Below, piece by piece: positions 3,797-13,700 of a stretch of 64,000 nucleotides of DNA. Location of the stretch: the IMG/VR virus record IMGVR_UViG_3300049460_000128, positions 1 to 64,000 of that record. One strand, 5' to 3'. Each line of letters opens with the position of its first letter. The stretch's first letter is position 1. The position numbers and the translations under genes are program-made. The notes under the pieces are model-generated. The model was not told the origin of the DNA. It saw only the letters and a list, made by a program, of their open reading frames with translations, and made no database searches.

Positions 3797-4825
3797 TTAC
3801 TTATTGTTGACCGCCAGGTAATGGCACAGTGGAATCATTTCATTCCAGGTTTCGGCAATACCTGCCAGCGTAGTGCTTTTGCCTTTTTTGGCCGAGAATT
3901 CTTTCGTCCAGTCATGGATTTCACCGTTTACCGCATCGAAGCCTTCCTGCTCTTCCATCACGTTGCGCAGTGCATCCTTGGCGATATACCGGCAGTTGGA
4001 CAGGTTGGTGAGGTCGGCAGTAGTGCGTTGTTCGACCATGGTGAATTTGTTGCCCTCGATAGTGTACTTGGCGTTCTGGCCTAGGTTGCTGATGGTAAAC
4101 AGCACTGCCAGCAGATCAATTTCGGGATTGGTCATACGTCGATCAGCTTTTTTCAAAGCTGCCATCTTATCAGTTGTAATTTCGCCGACCTTGCGAGCTT
4201 TTTGCACAAGATCGTACCAGGCTTGCTGCACTTCAGGTTTCAAGGCCGATGCAAGCTGACCTTCACGCGGGTACAGATTGATGCCAGTGTGGCTTGGTGC
4301 TTCTTTGTGGTAAACGTTCAGGGCGATATGCGTGCGATGGAATTCAATCGTACCGCGCAGCGTGCCATCGGCCGAATCACCTACCGCCCGAGTTTCGTAA
4401 GATGGTTCCAGGTTCAGGCCCGCAAAATCGAAGCCGGCGAATATCTCGGCCGCAAATGCGTTCGCCTTGATGTTCCAATTACGGCCATATTCGATCATGG
4501 CGTGTTGTTGAGCCACATAAGCGGCCAGTGCGTCGATGTCACGTTCGAGCGATTGTGGATTACCGCGCTGGTTCGAGAATTCTTTTGTGTCGACCAACAT
4601 AGCCTCCAGGCCTTTGTTAACCGTTTCTTCGTAGACGATGCCATCCATTTTGGTGGGAATATCGTTATGCTGGACCTCTACAGTCACGTTATACGGCAAT
4701 TGATACGTTTCTGGGTAGCGAGTACCAAACAGACTTGCGGTTTTAGCTGACATCGGCTCCTGGTTCAGTTTTTTGAAGAATGCGGTCAGGATGTCTGCTT
4801 GTGCTTGGGTCAGATTTGGGATCAT
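3797..4825 (-). CDS. hypothetical protein
   Basis: 342-aa ORF with own promoter and terminator. Confidence 0.85.
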   Translation of the reverse strand: MIPNLTQAQADILTAFFKKLNQEPMSAKTASLFGTRYPETYQLPYNVTVEVQHNDIPTKMDGIVYEETVNKGLEAMLVDTKEFSNQRGNPQSLERDIDALAAYVAQQHAMIEYGRNWNIKANAFAAEIFAGFDFAGLNLEPSYETRAVGDSADGTLRGTIEFHRTHIALNVYHKEAPSHTGINLYPREGQLASALKPEVQQAWYDLVQKARKVGEITTDKMAALKKADRRMTNPEIDLLAVLFTISNLGQNAKYTIEGNKFTMVEQRTTADLTNLSNCRYIAKDALRNVMEEQEGFDAVNGEIHDWTKEFSAKKGKSTTLAGIAETWNEMIPLCHYLAVNNK

Positions 4826-4929: not shown

Positions 4930-5574
4930 TTAAGCTGGGTCTGTTACCGTTACCGCGATAGTAGCAGTCACGGTATTCAGTGCAGTGCTCGTGATCGTAA
5001 TCGTTGCCGAACCAGCAGCTACCGCAGTCACCAGACCGCTTGCTGATACAGTTGCAAAGCCAGTTGCGGACGACGTGTAGGTGACAGTCTGAACAGCACC
5101 AGCCGGAACAACCGAGGCAGTGATCTGACTGGTGTCACCGACCACCAGAGTCATAGTGGCTGGTGAACGTGTGATGCTAGTTGGAGCAGGTGGTGGGGTT
5201 GGTACCACTTCCAGAGCTGCTTGAGTTGCCGATGCCGAACCAAGAGTCCACGACAGAGTTGAGCCATCAGTTGTGTTGCACGAAGCCGACATCAGTTTCG
5301 ATACGTAACGAACAGTGCTCGATGCATCAGTGATCTGGATGGTTGCTTGACCAGCAGCCAACGAGGTTGCTTGTGCGGTGGTGACCACGAGGTCAACGGT
5401 GAACATGTTTGTGCCGTCAGCGGTAACCAGGTACTTGACTGGACCCAGTTGCTTGACGATGTAGCCGGTTACGACTGCGGTGCCGTTATGGAAACGAACA
5501 CGAATTTTACCTGGCTCTGCGCCAAAGTTTGAGTTGTTGATTGGACGACCCATAAGTATCTCCTGAAAAGCCAT
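4930..5574 (-). CDS. virion protein with C-terminal Ig-like (Big_2) domain
   Basis: TLVVGDTSQITASVVP...VTYTSS...ATVSASGLVTAVAAGSATITIT; TAAATA late-type motif upstream. Confidence 0.8.
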   Translation of the reverse strand: MAFQEILMGRPINNSNFGAEPGKIRVRFHNGTAVVTGYIVKQLGPVKYLVTADGTNMFTVDLVVTTAQATSLAAGQATIQITDASSTVRYVSKLMSASCNTTDGSTLSWTLGSASATQAALEVVPTPPPAPTSITRSPATMTLVVGDTSQITASVVPAGAVQTVTYTSSATGFATVSASGLVTAVAAGSATITITSTALNTVTATIAVTVTDPA

Positions 5575-6054: not shown

Positions 6055-6188
6055 CTATTGTCTTTCCCTCGATTCGTCTTGATGATGAACCAGAAATTCA
6101 GTCCACACGTTAGTACCAGGGCAATTGTTGCCACCGTGACTTGGAAAACTACGCCCGCGCACTCGGCCATCATTACTTGAATTTCCAT
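6051..6188 (-). CDS. small membrane protein
   Basis: MEIQVMMAE..., one hydrophobic stretch, GGAG RBS. Confidence 0.5.
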   Translation of the reverse strand: MEIQVMMAECAGVVFQVTVATIALVLTCGLNFWFIIKTNRGKDNS

Positions 6189-6247
6189 ACAAGTGTCTCC
6201 TGTTATTTTCCACCAATATAGCATGATATGGTATTTAGAAGACAAAT

Positions 6248-6275
6248 AAAAAAGCCCGCCGAAGCGAGCTTTTTT
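6248..6275 (-). terminator. intrinsic terminator ending the tmRNA operon
   Basis: AAAAAAGCTCGC-TTCG-GCGGGCTTTTTT. Confidence 0.85.
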
Positions 6276-6280
6276 GAGAC

Positions 6281-6606
6281 TTGGATGATGAGGTATGTCT
6301 CTACCCCCACCGTTTAGGCTGCTACAGCCTGACGGAACGAAGAATCGTTTGCATTTACAACGTGCCGACTTTTATTTTCGTGAATCATCGACTTTCACGT
6401 GTTGTCATCTTCGGCTTATTCACCCTGTCGAAACCAGGTCAGGCCCATCATATAAGATTCTCTCGCTTACGTCTCGCGGGATACTGCGCTTTATCCTGAT
6501 AGTGGCCAGCGAAGTTTATCATGCGCTGCTGGTCTAACCTACCGAAAATCTATATGGTGGACCTGTGGGGAATCGAACCCCAGTCCAGAATGCCTCTACG
6601 TCCAAA
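6281..6606 (-). ncRNA. ssrA: tmRNA, circularly permuted (two-piece)
   Basis: Acceptor piece ...GGACTGGGGTTCGATTCCCCACAGGTCCACCA ends at 6555; coding piece starts GGGCCTGACCTGGTTTCGAC at 6446; G3:U70 pair; tag ORF 6352-6314 = ANDSSFRQAVAA*. Confidence 0.92.
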
Positions 6607-6668
6607 TCTGTCAGTTGCCTGACCACAACAATGTAATGCGCCTATCAGGCGGGGTAAGCCCCGTCATC

Positions 6669-12091: not shown

Positions 12092-12520
12092 ATGAAAACC
12101 ATCTCGGCAACGGTAACTCAATATCAAGCAGATGACGGCACGCCATTCGACAGCGAAGCGGCATGCAAGCTGTACGAGGATGAACTGAAACGCACCTCCT
12201 ACTGGATCGTGTACTTCAATCCAGACCTCACGGAAGGGCGGGGCACGCAGTATTCCACGGCATTCAGTGTGGTCACGCCATACGGCAAGAGTGATGCGCA
12301 AATGTGGATGACGGACTACTGCATGCAGAAACATGGTCGCCCAGTGGCATTCGTGCAAGGCGCATCGCCATGCCCAAACTGGACTCTGAGTGAGCTCGAT
12401 CGCAAAGCATACGAAGCCCACAAGGCCCGTACTCCTGATCGTTACAACCAGCACACGGTTGGCGTGTTGAAGCTGAAAGGTGACGACAAGCTGCACTACG
12501 CCTTGACCTTGGTCAAATAG
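12092..12520 (+). CDS. hypothetical phage protein
   Basis: GGAGG RBS, MKTISAT...YQADDGTPFDSEAACKLYE...PDLTEGRG. Confidence 0.8.
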   Translation: MKTISATVTQYQADDGTPFDSEAACKLYEDELKRTSYWIVYFNPDLTEGRGTQYSTAFSVVTPYGKSDAQMWMTDYCMQKHGRPVAFVQGASPCPNWTLSELDRKAYEAHKARTPDRYNQHTVGVLKLKGDDKLHYALTLVK

Positions 12521-12524
12521 TCGT

Positions 12525-12552
12525 AAAAAAGCCCCTAGGCTAGGGGCTTTTT
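12525..12552. terminator. bidirectional intrinsic terminator
   Basis: AAAAAAGCCCCTAG-G-CTAGGGGCTTTTT between convergent units. Confidence 0.85.
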
Positions 12553-12555
12553 GTT

Positions 12556-12709
12556 TGGTGGCGAGAGGAGGGGTCGAACCTCCAATGTGCTACACATTGA
12601 CAAATATGCGTGCTCGAGGATCCGGATCCAATTGGCCGCCCTACACTCGTCAACTTAGAACACTCTCCAGCTCATCGGCTGGCGTATCTACCAATTCTAC
12701 TACCCCGCC
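12556..12709 (-). ncRNA. tRNA frame with ~80-nt variable-region insert and 6-nt anticodon loop
   Basis: GGCGGGG/TCTCGCC-A-CCA, D arm with AATTGGTAGA, CCAGC-CGATGA-GCTGG, GGAGG-TTCGACC-CCTCC. Confidence 0.75.
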
Positions 12710-12712
12710 TAA

Positions 12713-13062
12713 AATGTAATGGTGGATGACCGTTGGTGTGCTATTACGCCCAATGCTCAACGGGTCTTGTACGACATCGCGCTTACTCTAATCCCTTTAC
12801 CCTCAGCGCTTACCTAGGGGCCGTTATCCTTCGGCATCCTGTAGTCATGGGCTACGCCCCATAACATGATGACCAATTTCCTGCCAGCTGGGAAATTGTT
12901 GCCATCTTATCGTACAAACTGTACTTGTCCTTCCCCGGTGGATTATGCGCGATGATTGCCACCATCTGAAGCTGGGATCGCTTCCGCCCTTATCCACTTT
13001 GCAACTCTTTAAAGGATGGCTGCTTCTAAGCCCACCTTCCAAAAGTCATCCACCATTACATT
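12713..13062 (-). ncRNA. structured RNA containing a split mimic of 23S rRNA H43/H44 (GTPase-associated centre)
   Basis: Perfect 18-bp terminal helix; GGCTTAGAAGCAGCCATCCTTTAAAGAG (13032-13005) and GCGTAATAGCACAC (12749-12736). Confidence 0.85.
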
Positions 13063-13063
13063 C

Positions 13064-13280
13064 ATGTGCTTTGTTGGGCACCATCCGCCACCCCCATCGG
13101 GTCAGCATCCACAGCGGGATTACTAGGGACTCGAACCCTTCTTCGCTTGACTGTACGGGCCAAGCTAGTACGCTATCATGAACCATCTGCATCACTTACC
13201 GCGAATAGGCGATGTTTCCCGTTCATGCTTCCCAAATTAATGGTTTTTCACGTAGACGACTGATGTCCAACAAAGCACAT
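13064..13280 (-). ncRNA. structured RNA with T-loop hairpin
   Basis: 14-bp closing helix ATGTGCTTTGTTGG/CCAACAAAGCACAT; AGGG-TTCGAGT-CCCT; starts just after promoter. Confidence 0.7.
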
Positions 13281-13287
13281 ACATGAC

Positions 13288-13316
13288 ACTATACTGCTGG
13301 TTCAGCTACCAGTCAA
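13288..13316 (-). promoter_or_regulatory. sigma70-type promoter of ncRNA operon
   Basis: TTGACT-17-TATAGT. Confidence 0.75.
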
Positions 13317-13340
13317 GCATTCTTTTCTGGTAGCTGAACC

Positions 13341-13700
13341 TTAAATGTCCCACGGATTAGCCCAACGCTGATATTTGCGATCATCGATGAAGTCCCGCAG
13401 GTCTGGCTCATAGTCGGGATTCTGGAGGTGACGCACCAGTTCGTGCTCGTTATGAGCCCTTGCCGAATTCTTGCCACCCTTCACAGCATACCAACCATAG
13501 TATTTCTTGCTGTCGCGATGAAAGCGCCAGTAGCCTTCATCCAACTCTTTACCAGTCTTCCAAATGCGTGGGAAAGCCCACACGGTATCATGGCGACCGG
13601 AATTACCATTCCACTCATCTGGGATGGTGGTCAGGTACCTTTTAATGTTGCTGCTGCGCCCGATGCGCTTTTCGCCTTTACGGCGGATGGTTCGACTCAT
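13341..13700 (-). CDS. small basic hypothetical protein
   Basis: MSRTIRRKGEKR...; GGAG RBS inside a hairpin. Confidence 0.75.
   Translation of the reverse strand: MSRTIRRKGEKRIGRSSNIKRYLTTIPDEWNGNSGRHDTVWAFPRIWKTGKELDEGYWRFHRDSKKYYGWYAVKGGKNSARAHNEHELVRHLQNPDYEPDLRDFIDDRKYQRWANPWDI

Follow-up and report, generated by a model that had tools for sequence, protein, structure and literature searches.

The window analyzed here, 64,000 nt of viral DNA from IMG/VR record IMGVR_UViG_3300049460_000128 (positions 1 to 64,000), encodes on its minus strand, at 12713–13062, a stem-closed RNA whose two ends jointly copy helices H43 and H44 of 23S rRNA, the GTPase-associated center (GAC) bound by ribosomal protein uL11 (L11). 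Our results show that this split-GAC RNA reproduces both the sequence elements of the 58-nt GAC (H43, H44, and the top of H42) and their tertiary fold, and that it belongs to a large family of phage noncoding RNAs (ncRNAs), with at least 240 distinct phage or prophage elements overall, none of them within a 23S gene. A first-pass annotation, produced by a model from the sequence alone, had described the element as a selected mimic of the GAC and not as stray rRNA. This proposal is borne out by hundreds of homologs that keep both halves and the closing helix, and by covariation of both the helices and the tertiary contacts.

The element is delimited by an inverted repeat with 24-nt arms (12713–12736 and 13039–13062, 92% complementary). 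Its closing helix consists of a perfect 18-bp outer stem (13062–13045 with 12730–12713), an interruption, and a 4-bp inner stem, UUGG/CCAA, so that an 18-bp repeat does close an element of ~350 nt, as the first-pass annotation had stated. The sequence just inside the 5′ arm is UUGGAAGGUGGGCUUAGAAGCAGCCAUCCUUUAAAGAGU, and that just inside the 3′ arm is GGCGUAAUAGCACACCAA. Compared with one E. coli rrn operon by blastn-short, the H43 part is identical at 26 of 27 positions (E 6e-8), and a BLAST search of 5,426 E. coli genomes returned matches to it in 23S rRNA only. The H44 part matches E. coli 23S rRNA over 10/10 positions by BLAST (GCGUAAUAGC), and 13/14 positions agree when GCGUAAUAGCACAC is aligned by eye with E. 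coli GCGUAAUAGCUCAC. Both the 26/27 and the 13/14 had been given in the annotation and proved correct. Its compensatory change of AUG/CAU to AGG/CCU corresponds to the 1058–1080 pair, which is G-C in the window copy versus U-A in E. coli. The statement that no other rRNA flanks the element also holds, as a BLAST comparison of window positions 12500–13330 with the E. coli rrn operon found no rRNA resemblance beyond the GAC halves.

Two further statements were right in part. The loops of A1067 and A1095 are intact in the window copy (13027 and 12745), but A1067 is not invariant across the family. An insert of about the predicted ~255 nt is present (253 nt), but it does not sit at the bulge between the two helices; it lies inside the 5′ strand of H44, between U1090 and G1091, and carries a UUG linker where most relatives have UUU. 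The whole element folds with a z score of −5.2 relative to shuffles. ORFs (open reading frames) of 65 and 78 aa overlap it.

An H43-pattern scan of IMG/VR gave 83 stretches among the matches listed, of which 82 are split and one is contiguous rRNA. Because this first scan fixed the H43 sequence, further scans were anchored on the 3′ half. The 3′-anchored scan for elements with a C1092-G1099 pair (C type) yielded at least 107 further unique elements, 74 of them viral and 33 from bacterial genomes or metagenome-assembled genomes (MAGs) of many phyla, and a scan for the U1092-A1099 variant (U type) added at least 72 more. Matches of the 18-nt 3′ pattern in bacterial genome contigs were mostly due to chance, with at least 12 mismatches in the 5′ half; real elements were present at 35 loci among the matches listed. 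Cultured carriers comprise 11 phages of Pseudomonas, Xanthomonas, Aeromonas, Acinetobacter, Ralstonia, Cronobacter, and Pectobacterium. In a BLAST search of GenBank phages, the same H43 block was found in the tRNA-Trp/tRNA-Arg interval of Pseudomonas phage UNO-G1W1, in the tRNA-Asn/tRNA-Pro interval of phage pf16, and after the 2′-5′ RNA ligase gene of Xanthomonas phage XacN1.

We built a covariance model, R1, from 25 short family members. The window element scored 66.9 bits (E 5e-18), and R1 found one element per locus in 99 further loci, except for two in L251. The model also confirmed the elements of Milchi, UNO-G1W1, pf16, XacN1, GAP32, Aeromonas 4_4572, CBB, RSP15, and ME3 (58–92 bits), whereas XaC1 and Astolliot were matched by BLAST only. 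Real rRNA GACs score 38–60 bits with R1. The two elements of L251, a Candidatus Limenecus MAG contig, lie ~1 kb apart (3997–4343 and 5205–5385) and have different inserts.

The first-pass annotation had proposed searching phage genomes for the two halves with a variable spacer and comparing the element with Rfam. The former search returned the hundreds of homologs described above, whose helices covary. In Rfam 15, no match to 12713–13062 was obtained at the gathering threshold, and noise only at E values up to 10; no family there, including large subunit (LSU) rRNA, GOLLD, ROOL, ribosomal-protein leaders, and introns, covers the element. A group I or II intron or an rRNA intervening sequence was rejected, as no intron model matched, there are no rRNA exons, and the insert can be a hairpin of 15–28 nt. 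In every GenBank phage record examined, the element is unannotated or overlapped by small hypothetical ORFs. In Milchi (L313, 730–861) and UNO-G1W1 (L002, 2572–2679), the strand opposite the RNA carries overlapping ORFs labeled "hypothetical protein," which are probably annotation artifacts. Paenibacillus phage Pd_22F (L312, MZ092003.1, ~83.3–84.7 kb) was left out of the family, as it has genuine 23S rRNA at the record end, either a host fragment or an assembly contaminant.

Family members share one layout. A closing helix of generic sequence (4 to >25 bp) is followed by G/A1056, H43, and a junction ending in AAAGAGU (1084–1090); then come the insert, itself beginning with a helix, a UUU-R linker, the H44 hairpin GCG-UAAY-AGC, A1101, C1102, A1103, and the closing strand. 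A1101 pairs with U1090, and C1102 pairs with G1087. The window element has the closing helix, the H43 half ending in AAAGAGU, the covarying helix at the base of the insert, and the GCG-UAAY-AGC-ACAC half, and its UUG linker is the sole deviation.

Folding with RNAalifold gave the expected helices, and 14 of 18 pairs showed compensatory changes. We assessed the helices on a sample of 101 sequences that contained no R1 seed. Paired cells amounted to 96.6%, compared with 68.8% in shuffles, and 17 of the 18 helix pairs change on both sides. The covariation score of 0.709 was reached by none of 500 shuffles (0.164), and slid controls did not exceed 0.164. The H43 pairs 1057–1081, 1058–1080, 1059–1079, 1062–1076, 1063–1075, and 1064–1074 are all present in the window and are covarying or invariant in the family; those that covary include 1057–1081, 1058–1080, 1062–1076, and 1064–1074. 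The insert base helix and the closing helix both covary across the family. A chance origin is excluded at the family level.

In the rRNA GAC, a junction mini-hairpin (J31) is closed by U1082-A1086, which is C-G in Haloarcula, and the loop-helix base triples are C1072/C1092-G1099 and G1071/G1091-C1100 (PMC2952862, PMC8614978). We examined these contacts in the 107 elements of the 3′-anchored set, in which the 5′ half is unbiased. The 1082–1086 pair is C-G in 42 elements, U-A in 42, and A-U in 13. The mini-hairpin that it closes is present, with A1084 kept in 106/107 elements and A1085 in 107/107. The triple 1072·(1092–1099) follows the same rule as in rRNA: C1072 occurs in 107/107 elements with C1092-G1099, and U1072 occurs in 71/72 elements with U1092-A1099. 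A third sample, anchored on neither half, obeyed the rule in 3/3 and 8/8 elements. The halves joined by this covarying triple are up to ~390 nt apart in the sequence. G1071, which forms the triple with G1091-C1100, is kept in 106/107 C-type and 71/72 U-type elements. Each of U1060, A1088, G1071, C1072, A1077, A1084, A1085, G1087, G1089, and U1090 is kept in at least 104 of the 107. The U1060-A1088 contact (U in 106/107, A in 105/107) is near-invariant and therefore compatible with a pair, with no variation from which covariation could be read. Since two fold-defining tertiary contacts covary, the RNA is under selection to fold like the GAC, beyond mere resemblance to it.

The L11 C-domain interface on rRNA comprises positions 1058–1060, 1062–1065, 1075–1083, and 1088 (PMC1802607), and L11 binding requires the GAC tertiary fold (PMC6239185). 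Across the family, the L11 C-domain contact positions are invariant or altered only with compensation. The factor/thiostrepton pocket is looser. In the 107 elements, position 1067 is A in 80 and G in 25 (23%), position 1068 is G in 75 and A in 31, and position 1070 is A in 90 and G in 17; at the H44 loop tip, 1096 can be A, G, or U, and 1097 can be C, U, or A. Within the same region, A1095 is kept in 55/57, U1066 in 105/107, and A1069 in 100/107, and 1067 is a purine with few exceptions. Position 1061 varies in the family, as it does in rRNA (PMC6239185). On the evidence of sequence conservation, this pattern favors a requirement for the fold and for L11 C-domain binding.

The insert ranges from 15 to 368 nt across the family. 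Its minimal forms are plain hairpins. Among longer inserts, several classes recur, and each is conserved between unrelated contigs; some inserts combine classes. Class I has the 3′ module CACCCCG-GNRA-YGGUAAGG. Its end, GRCACCCCG-GNRA/UAAC-YGGUAAGGNY, lies ~10 nt before the base helix in ~45 of 163 elements. Class II, to which the inserts of the window, XacN1, L011, and L013 belong, has the blocks GGGGAAGGACAAGUACAGUUUG and AAGACCCUUAGAGCA, a covarying long-range helix, and the signature GGGGAAGGACAAGUACAG. Class III reads GCGAAAUG...GAUGUGC...GGGAAAAUG. Examples of conserved insert modules are found in L002 (2620–2660), L003, L007, and L029. A resemblance of class I or class II blocks to other 23S segments was considered and was not supported.

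A large-insert branch of class II carries the hairpin loop (A/U)GUACG(A/G)GAGGA(A/U), a near-exact copy of the sarcin-ricin loop (SRL; AGUACGAGAGGAC in E. coli), which we first saw as BLAST matches of inserts to 23S rRNA at ~position 2657. A scan of viral sequences for the SRL motif gave 32 stretches, 13 of them inside split-GAC elements and 19 without GAC halves or stems. In the 13 elements (L023, L122, L128, L162, L316, L317, L318, L319, L329, L332, L334, L337, and L340), the hairpin always lies 230–258 nt after the start of the H43 half, with covarying flanking stems, in inserts of 310–400 nt; in L317, for example, it occupies ~6126–6148 of the reverse strand, in oriented coordinates. Some members thus duplicate the GAC together with the SRL, the two halves that rRNA contributes to the binding site of translational GTPases. 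A pattern search of the twin contig of the window, L066, found no SRL hairpin in the window insert. When the inserts were examined for further rRNA-like pieces, nothing but the SRL hairpin stood out, and the remaining 10–12-nt matches are at chance level.

The family resides among tRNA genes. A tRNA lies within 200 nt of 91 of 163 unique elements and within 1 kb of 108. In all 108 of the latter, the nearest tRNA is on the strand of the element, and all 1,021 tRNAs in the element loci are co-oriented with it. This strict co-orientation fixes the transcribed strand and argues for co-transcription with the tRNA arrays. The downstream neighbors of the element are tRNAs, a tRNA-like gene, or a terminator, and it is not upstream of any ribosomal-protein gene. 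There is no conserved neighboring protein, the top families (homing endonucleases, PNKP, AAA, and TerD) occurring in at most 10 of 194 loci. We found no L11 homolog in any phage carrying the RNA and no L11, L10, or L12 gene in the window; therefore, a protein partner would be that of the host. Transfer-messenger RNA (tmRNA) genes lie near the GAC element in L019 and L047 as well as in the window. At 14 of 163 loci (L011, L052, L077, L080, L096, L099, L118, L131, L148, L151, L158, L182, L195, and L298), the same array contains a tRNA with a CUA anticodon, of the amber-suppressor type. Such tRNAs beside a GAC mimic may matter because L11 influences RF1 termination.

The features of the window element and its neighbors are listed in Table 1. 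The source is a jumbo phage of ~297 kb (twin contig L066), a distant relative of PA5oct- and Rak2-like phages, which encodes a terminase, ribonucleotide reductase, DnaB, a sigma factor, and a permuted tmRNA. On the minus strand, a sigma-70-like site, an element that we call X, the GAC mimic, a tRNA-like gene, and a terminator hairpin follow one another in a compact cluster. Element X lies directly 5′ of the GAC mimic on the same strand and has no relation to it. No Rfam match and no phage BLAST match to element X were found, and a 20-mer scan retrieved the window's own contig only. The tRNA-like gene begins 3 nt downstream of the GAC mimic, has an odd anticodon loop without U33, and is not called by ARAGORN. 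The terminator-like hairpin is palindromic and would therefore be bidirectional. Another hairpin (13299–13340, 19-nt arms and a 4-nt loop) stands between the upstream ORF (13341–13700, minus strand) and the RNA cluster and overlaps the promoter-like site; it lacks a following U tract and is therefore no plain terminator. The permuted, two-piece tmRNA is at 6247–6645 of the window (minus strand), with the tag ANDSSFRQAVAA and a score of 93.5 bits against the permuted model. Its match to the betaproteobacterial tmRNA model scores 87.6 bits, a possible hint at the lineage of the host.

Table 1. Features of the split-GAC element and of its RNA cluster in the window, in the 5′ to 3′ order of the minus strand
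Feature	Window position	Strand	Evidence or description
Candidate sigma-70-like promoter, TTGACT-17-TATAGT	13288–13316	−	10/12 consensus matches; number of such sites in the region not above shuffles
Element X, ~220 nt, 15-bp closing stem, T-arm-like GGGUUCGAGUCCC	13063–13285	−	Inverted repeat; fold z −3.5
Outer stem, 5′ arm, 18 bp, perfect	13045–13062	−	Inverted-repeat search and fold
Inner closing stem, 5′ strand UUGG (= 23S 1052–1055), partner 12733–12736	13039–13042	−	Helix covaries across the family
H43-like hairpin (= 23S 1057–1081)	13013–13037	−	26/27 identity to E. coli 23S
U1060, A1067, G1071, C1072 of the H43-like hairpin	13034, 13027, 13023, 13022	−	
Junction strand UUAAAGAGU (= 1082–1090)	13004–13012	−	Literature contacts (PMC2952862) and family conservation
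U1082 and A1086 of the junction strand	13012, 13008	−	Tertiary pair
A1088 of the junction strand	13006	−	Partner of U1060
U1090 of the junction strand	13004	−	Pairs with A1101
Variable insert, 253 nt, class II	12751–13003	−	Base helix UGC/GCA, several hairpins, 3′ U-rich linker; conserved blocks GGGGAAGGACAAGUACAGUUUG and AAGACCCNUUGAGCA
3′ half: linker G, H44-like hairpin GCG-UAAU-AGC (1091–1100), A1101, C1102, A1103, closing strand CCAA (1104–1107)	12733–12750	−	
G1091, C1092, A1095, G1099 of the H44-like hairpin	12749, 12748, 12745, 12741	−	
Outer stem, 3′ arm, 18 bp	12713–12730	−	Inverted-repeat search and fold
tRNA-like gene, cloverleaf, ~80-nt arm in the variable region, encoded CCA	12559–12709	−	Rfam tRNA model, 31.5 bits versus gathering score 29
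Intrinsic-terminator-like hairpin GCCCCU-AGCCU-AGGGGC with U run, closing the RNA cluster	12526–12552	−	Inverted repeat; weak terminator-type Rfam matches

As to what the RNA does, our preferred reading is that it serves as a trans-acting stalk base free of the ribosome, with host uL11 as the most likely direct ligand; we hold this view tentatively, at somewhat less than even confidence. uL11 is ranked at the top because the isolated GAC is its autonomous binding site, because its interface is the best-kept surface of the RNA, and because no phage partner exists. The RNA would be produced abundantly along with the tRNAs, and the tRNA-processing enzymes would excise it; its long closing stem would also suit RNase III. 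Once freed, it would act in trans as a copy of the ribosomal stalk base. Binding of uL11 would draw L11 off the ribosomes or build an L11-RNA particle, and altered L11-dependent steps, such as RelA activation and the stringent response, RF1 termination, or the GTPase cycles of the factors, would favor the phage. These consequences, namely relief from RelA-dependent stringent control, altered RF1 termination, or the L11-RNA particle, are speculation. In a broader form, in which an RNA replica of the docking site of the translational GTPases, encoded in a phage tRNA array, competes for host uL11, for the factors or RelA, or for ribosome-targeting immune toxins, the proposal seems to us plausible while falling a little short of probable.

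Several points weigh against uL11 as the ligand. The L11 contacts are largely the nucleotides that build the fold, so conservation cannot separate L11 binding from a need for folding. The near-invariance of A1095 and U1066 and the purine at 1067 are not explained by L11 C-domain binding alone. The break in H44 lies one residue away from A1088/G1089, where it might impede L11. Since L11 matches ribosomes in abundance, a sponge for it would require tRNA-like copy numbers; the promoter and terminator of the window are candidates identified by consensus matches only. Finally, the SRL copied in some relatives is not an L11 ligand, and its presence keeps readings that involve the factors or toxins alive.

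One such reading is that the RNA is a decoy or competitive substrate for enzymes that attack the factor-binding site of the ribosome, as in abortive infection, toxin-antitoxin systems, or interbacterial toxins, and so leaves the ribosomes translating phage mRNA. We judge this unlikely, although it has several attractions. The element is at home in tRNA arrays, adjoined by tmRNA genes in the window and at some loci, which is cargo of the translation-repair and counter-defense kind, and the 13 relatives with an added SRL hairpin would fit as well. Ribotoxins and some VapC toxins classically target the SRL. As for the GAC, its H44 is ADP-ribosylated by the bacterial toxin Tre23 (PMC8661411), and a phage RNA that mimics an antitoxin provides a precedent (PMC3475682). 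Moreover, ribosome protection would help the phage, whereas sequestering an essential factor would hurt the phage too. Nevertheless, no anti-phage system directed at the GAC is known to us, and the literature searched revealed none. A site-specific enzyme would act at the tip of the H44 loop, yet no other part of the core varies as much (1096–1097), a stoichiometric decoy is weak against a catalytic toxin, and the neighbors of the element include no linked immunity-type gene. Alternatively, the RNA alone or loaded with L11 could titrate or mis-activate EF-G, IF2, RF3, factors of the HflX/BipA type, or the RelA-tRNA complex; we give this a lower probability still. Two rRNA elements make contact with these factors, namely the GAC and the SRL (PMC8661411, PMC2896532). 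Both occur on one RNA in 13 relatives, at a fixed position, and the retention of A1095, U1066, A1069, and a purine at 1067 agrees with factor contact. In work by Munishkin and Wool in 1997, EF-G reportedly bound isolated GAC and SRL oligonucleotides. Phages are also known to encode stalk proteins with L7/L12 domains (bioRxiv 10.1101/174177). However, A1067 is replaced by G in about one quarter of the elements and G1068 by A in ~30%, although both are critical for factor function in ribosomes; most members, including the window copy, are without the SRL hairpin, and titration of EF-G or IF2 would cripple phage translation too.

A role of the GAC fold as a structural platform appears to us improbable. 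Here, the fold would be a stable, nuclease-resistant three-way-junction clamp, with L11 perhaps as a passive chaperone, and the insert (an aptamer, a ribozyme, or a protein-binding domain) would be the functional module. Conservation of the insert classes across unrelated contigs and the stricter retention of fold-defining contacts than of loop tips are in agreement with this; however, members whose insert is a 15–28-nt hairpin keep the full core, at exposed positions dispensable for folding (A1095, U1066, and the purine at 1067), the core hardly departs from rRNA, and a generic clamp need not stay so near the rRNA sequence across phages of many phyla. At the far end, a captured 23S fragment without function, an intron-bearing rRNA gene, or an assembly artifact has a negligible probability. 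Some phage-labeled records do hold genuine rRNA, as at the end of the Pd_22F record and in L071. Against this, none of the 193 element-bearing loci has rRNA similarity over >60 nt, and the identical split architecture recurs in hundreds of diverse contigs, with pervasive compensatory and tertiary covariation, no intron family match, and a strict tRNA orientation. Because H44 is split at 1090/1091 by 15–368 nt and no rRNA flanks the element in these loci, it is a mimic and not rRNA, and a non-functional rRNA remnant is excluded.

The closest relative in structure is the GAC of 23S rRNA itself (H42–H44, nt 1051–1108). The phage element shares its secondary structure, near-identical sequence in H43, the junction, and the H44 hairpin, the pair 1082–1086, and the triples G1071·(G1091-C1100) and C1072·(C1092-G1099), with covariation as in rRNA phylogeny; its near-invariant U1060 and A1088 are compatible with the U1060-A1088 pair of rRNA. 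Unlike the 23S GAC, it is free-standing, ~90–480 nt long, and encoded outside the 23S gene among tRNAs; its H44 is interrupted at 1090/1091 by an insert and a UUU-R linker, the 1090–1101 pair is U-A, H42 is replaced by a generic helix, and the loop tips are relaxed (A1067G in 23%). Ribosomal-protein leaders, such as the L10 leader (RF00557) and the L1-regulated L11 operon leader, likewise imitate an rRNA site and bind a ribosomal protein off the ribosome, a binding that is predicted for the phage element. In contrast to it, they are cis-regulatory 5′ leaders with partial resemblance to rRNA, whereas the phage element is a near-exact copy with no match to a leader family. The proposed logic of an abundant ncRNA competing for a protein is that of 6S RNA, CsrB/RsmZ, and phage pseudo-ToxI, the last being a phage-encoded mimic of an antitoxin RNA (PMC3475682); these RNAs differ in target and fold, none imitates an rRNA domain, and titration by the phage element is a proposal only. 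Phage tmRNAs, GOLLD and ROOL (PMC12286853), and theta ribozymes (PMC10879173) share the tRNA-cluster niche and, presumably, co-transcription and processing with tRNAs. They have no sequence or structure relation to the split-GAC family (no Rfam match), which is the only one of these to copy an rRNA domain. The stable RNAs C and D of T4 are further non-tRNA passengers of phage tRNA clusters. In the laboratory, isolated GAC or SRL oligonucleotides have served as rRNA-fragment decoys that bind L11, thiostrepton, or EF-G, and expressed fragments sequester antibiotics. Such fragments are artificial and show that the isolated GAC or SRL is an autonomous ligand-binding module, whereas the phage element is natural, evolving, and insert-bearing.

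Full-text literature searches on the GAC, L11, rRNA mimics, and phage tRNA arrays found no published description of a split-GAC phage RNA, subscription-only literature lying outside this search. A 2026 preprint on phage ncRNAs was considered as a prior description and proved unrelated. We rate the family as new because it has no Rfam 15 match, no description in this literature, and no known relative in logic that is a free, virus-encoded copy of a functional center of rRNA.

If the proposed reading is true, the split-GAC RNA would be the first case of a natural viral decoy for a functional center of rRNA and would add a new layer to the conflict between phage and host over translation. A free mimic of the stalk base would form a new class of viral effector, the rRNA-domain decoy, beside phage tRNAs, tmRNAs, and phage-encoded ribosomal proteins. 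Phage control of L11-dependent stringent signaling or termination would become testable in the cultured phages pf16 and UNO-G1W1 (Pseudomonas), GAP32, CBB, and XacN1, as would the questions of whether bacterial immunity attacks the GAC or the SRL and of how much of the GAC sequence is needed for folding versus factor binding. Phage annotation pipelines miss the feature or mislabel it as small ORFs. In practical terms, the RNA would offer a compact natural scaffold of the L11 and thiostrepton site, with predicted binding, that tolerates insertions at a defined position. The family amounts to a deep mutational scan, performed by nature, of an rRNA domain that is universally conserved and here escapes ribosomal constraints; one of its base triples covaries cleanly.

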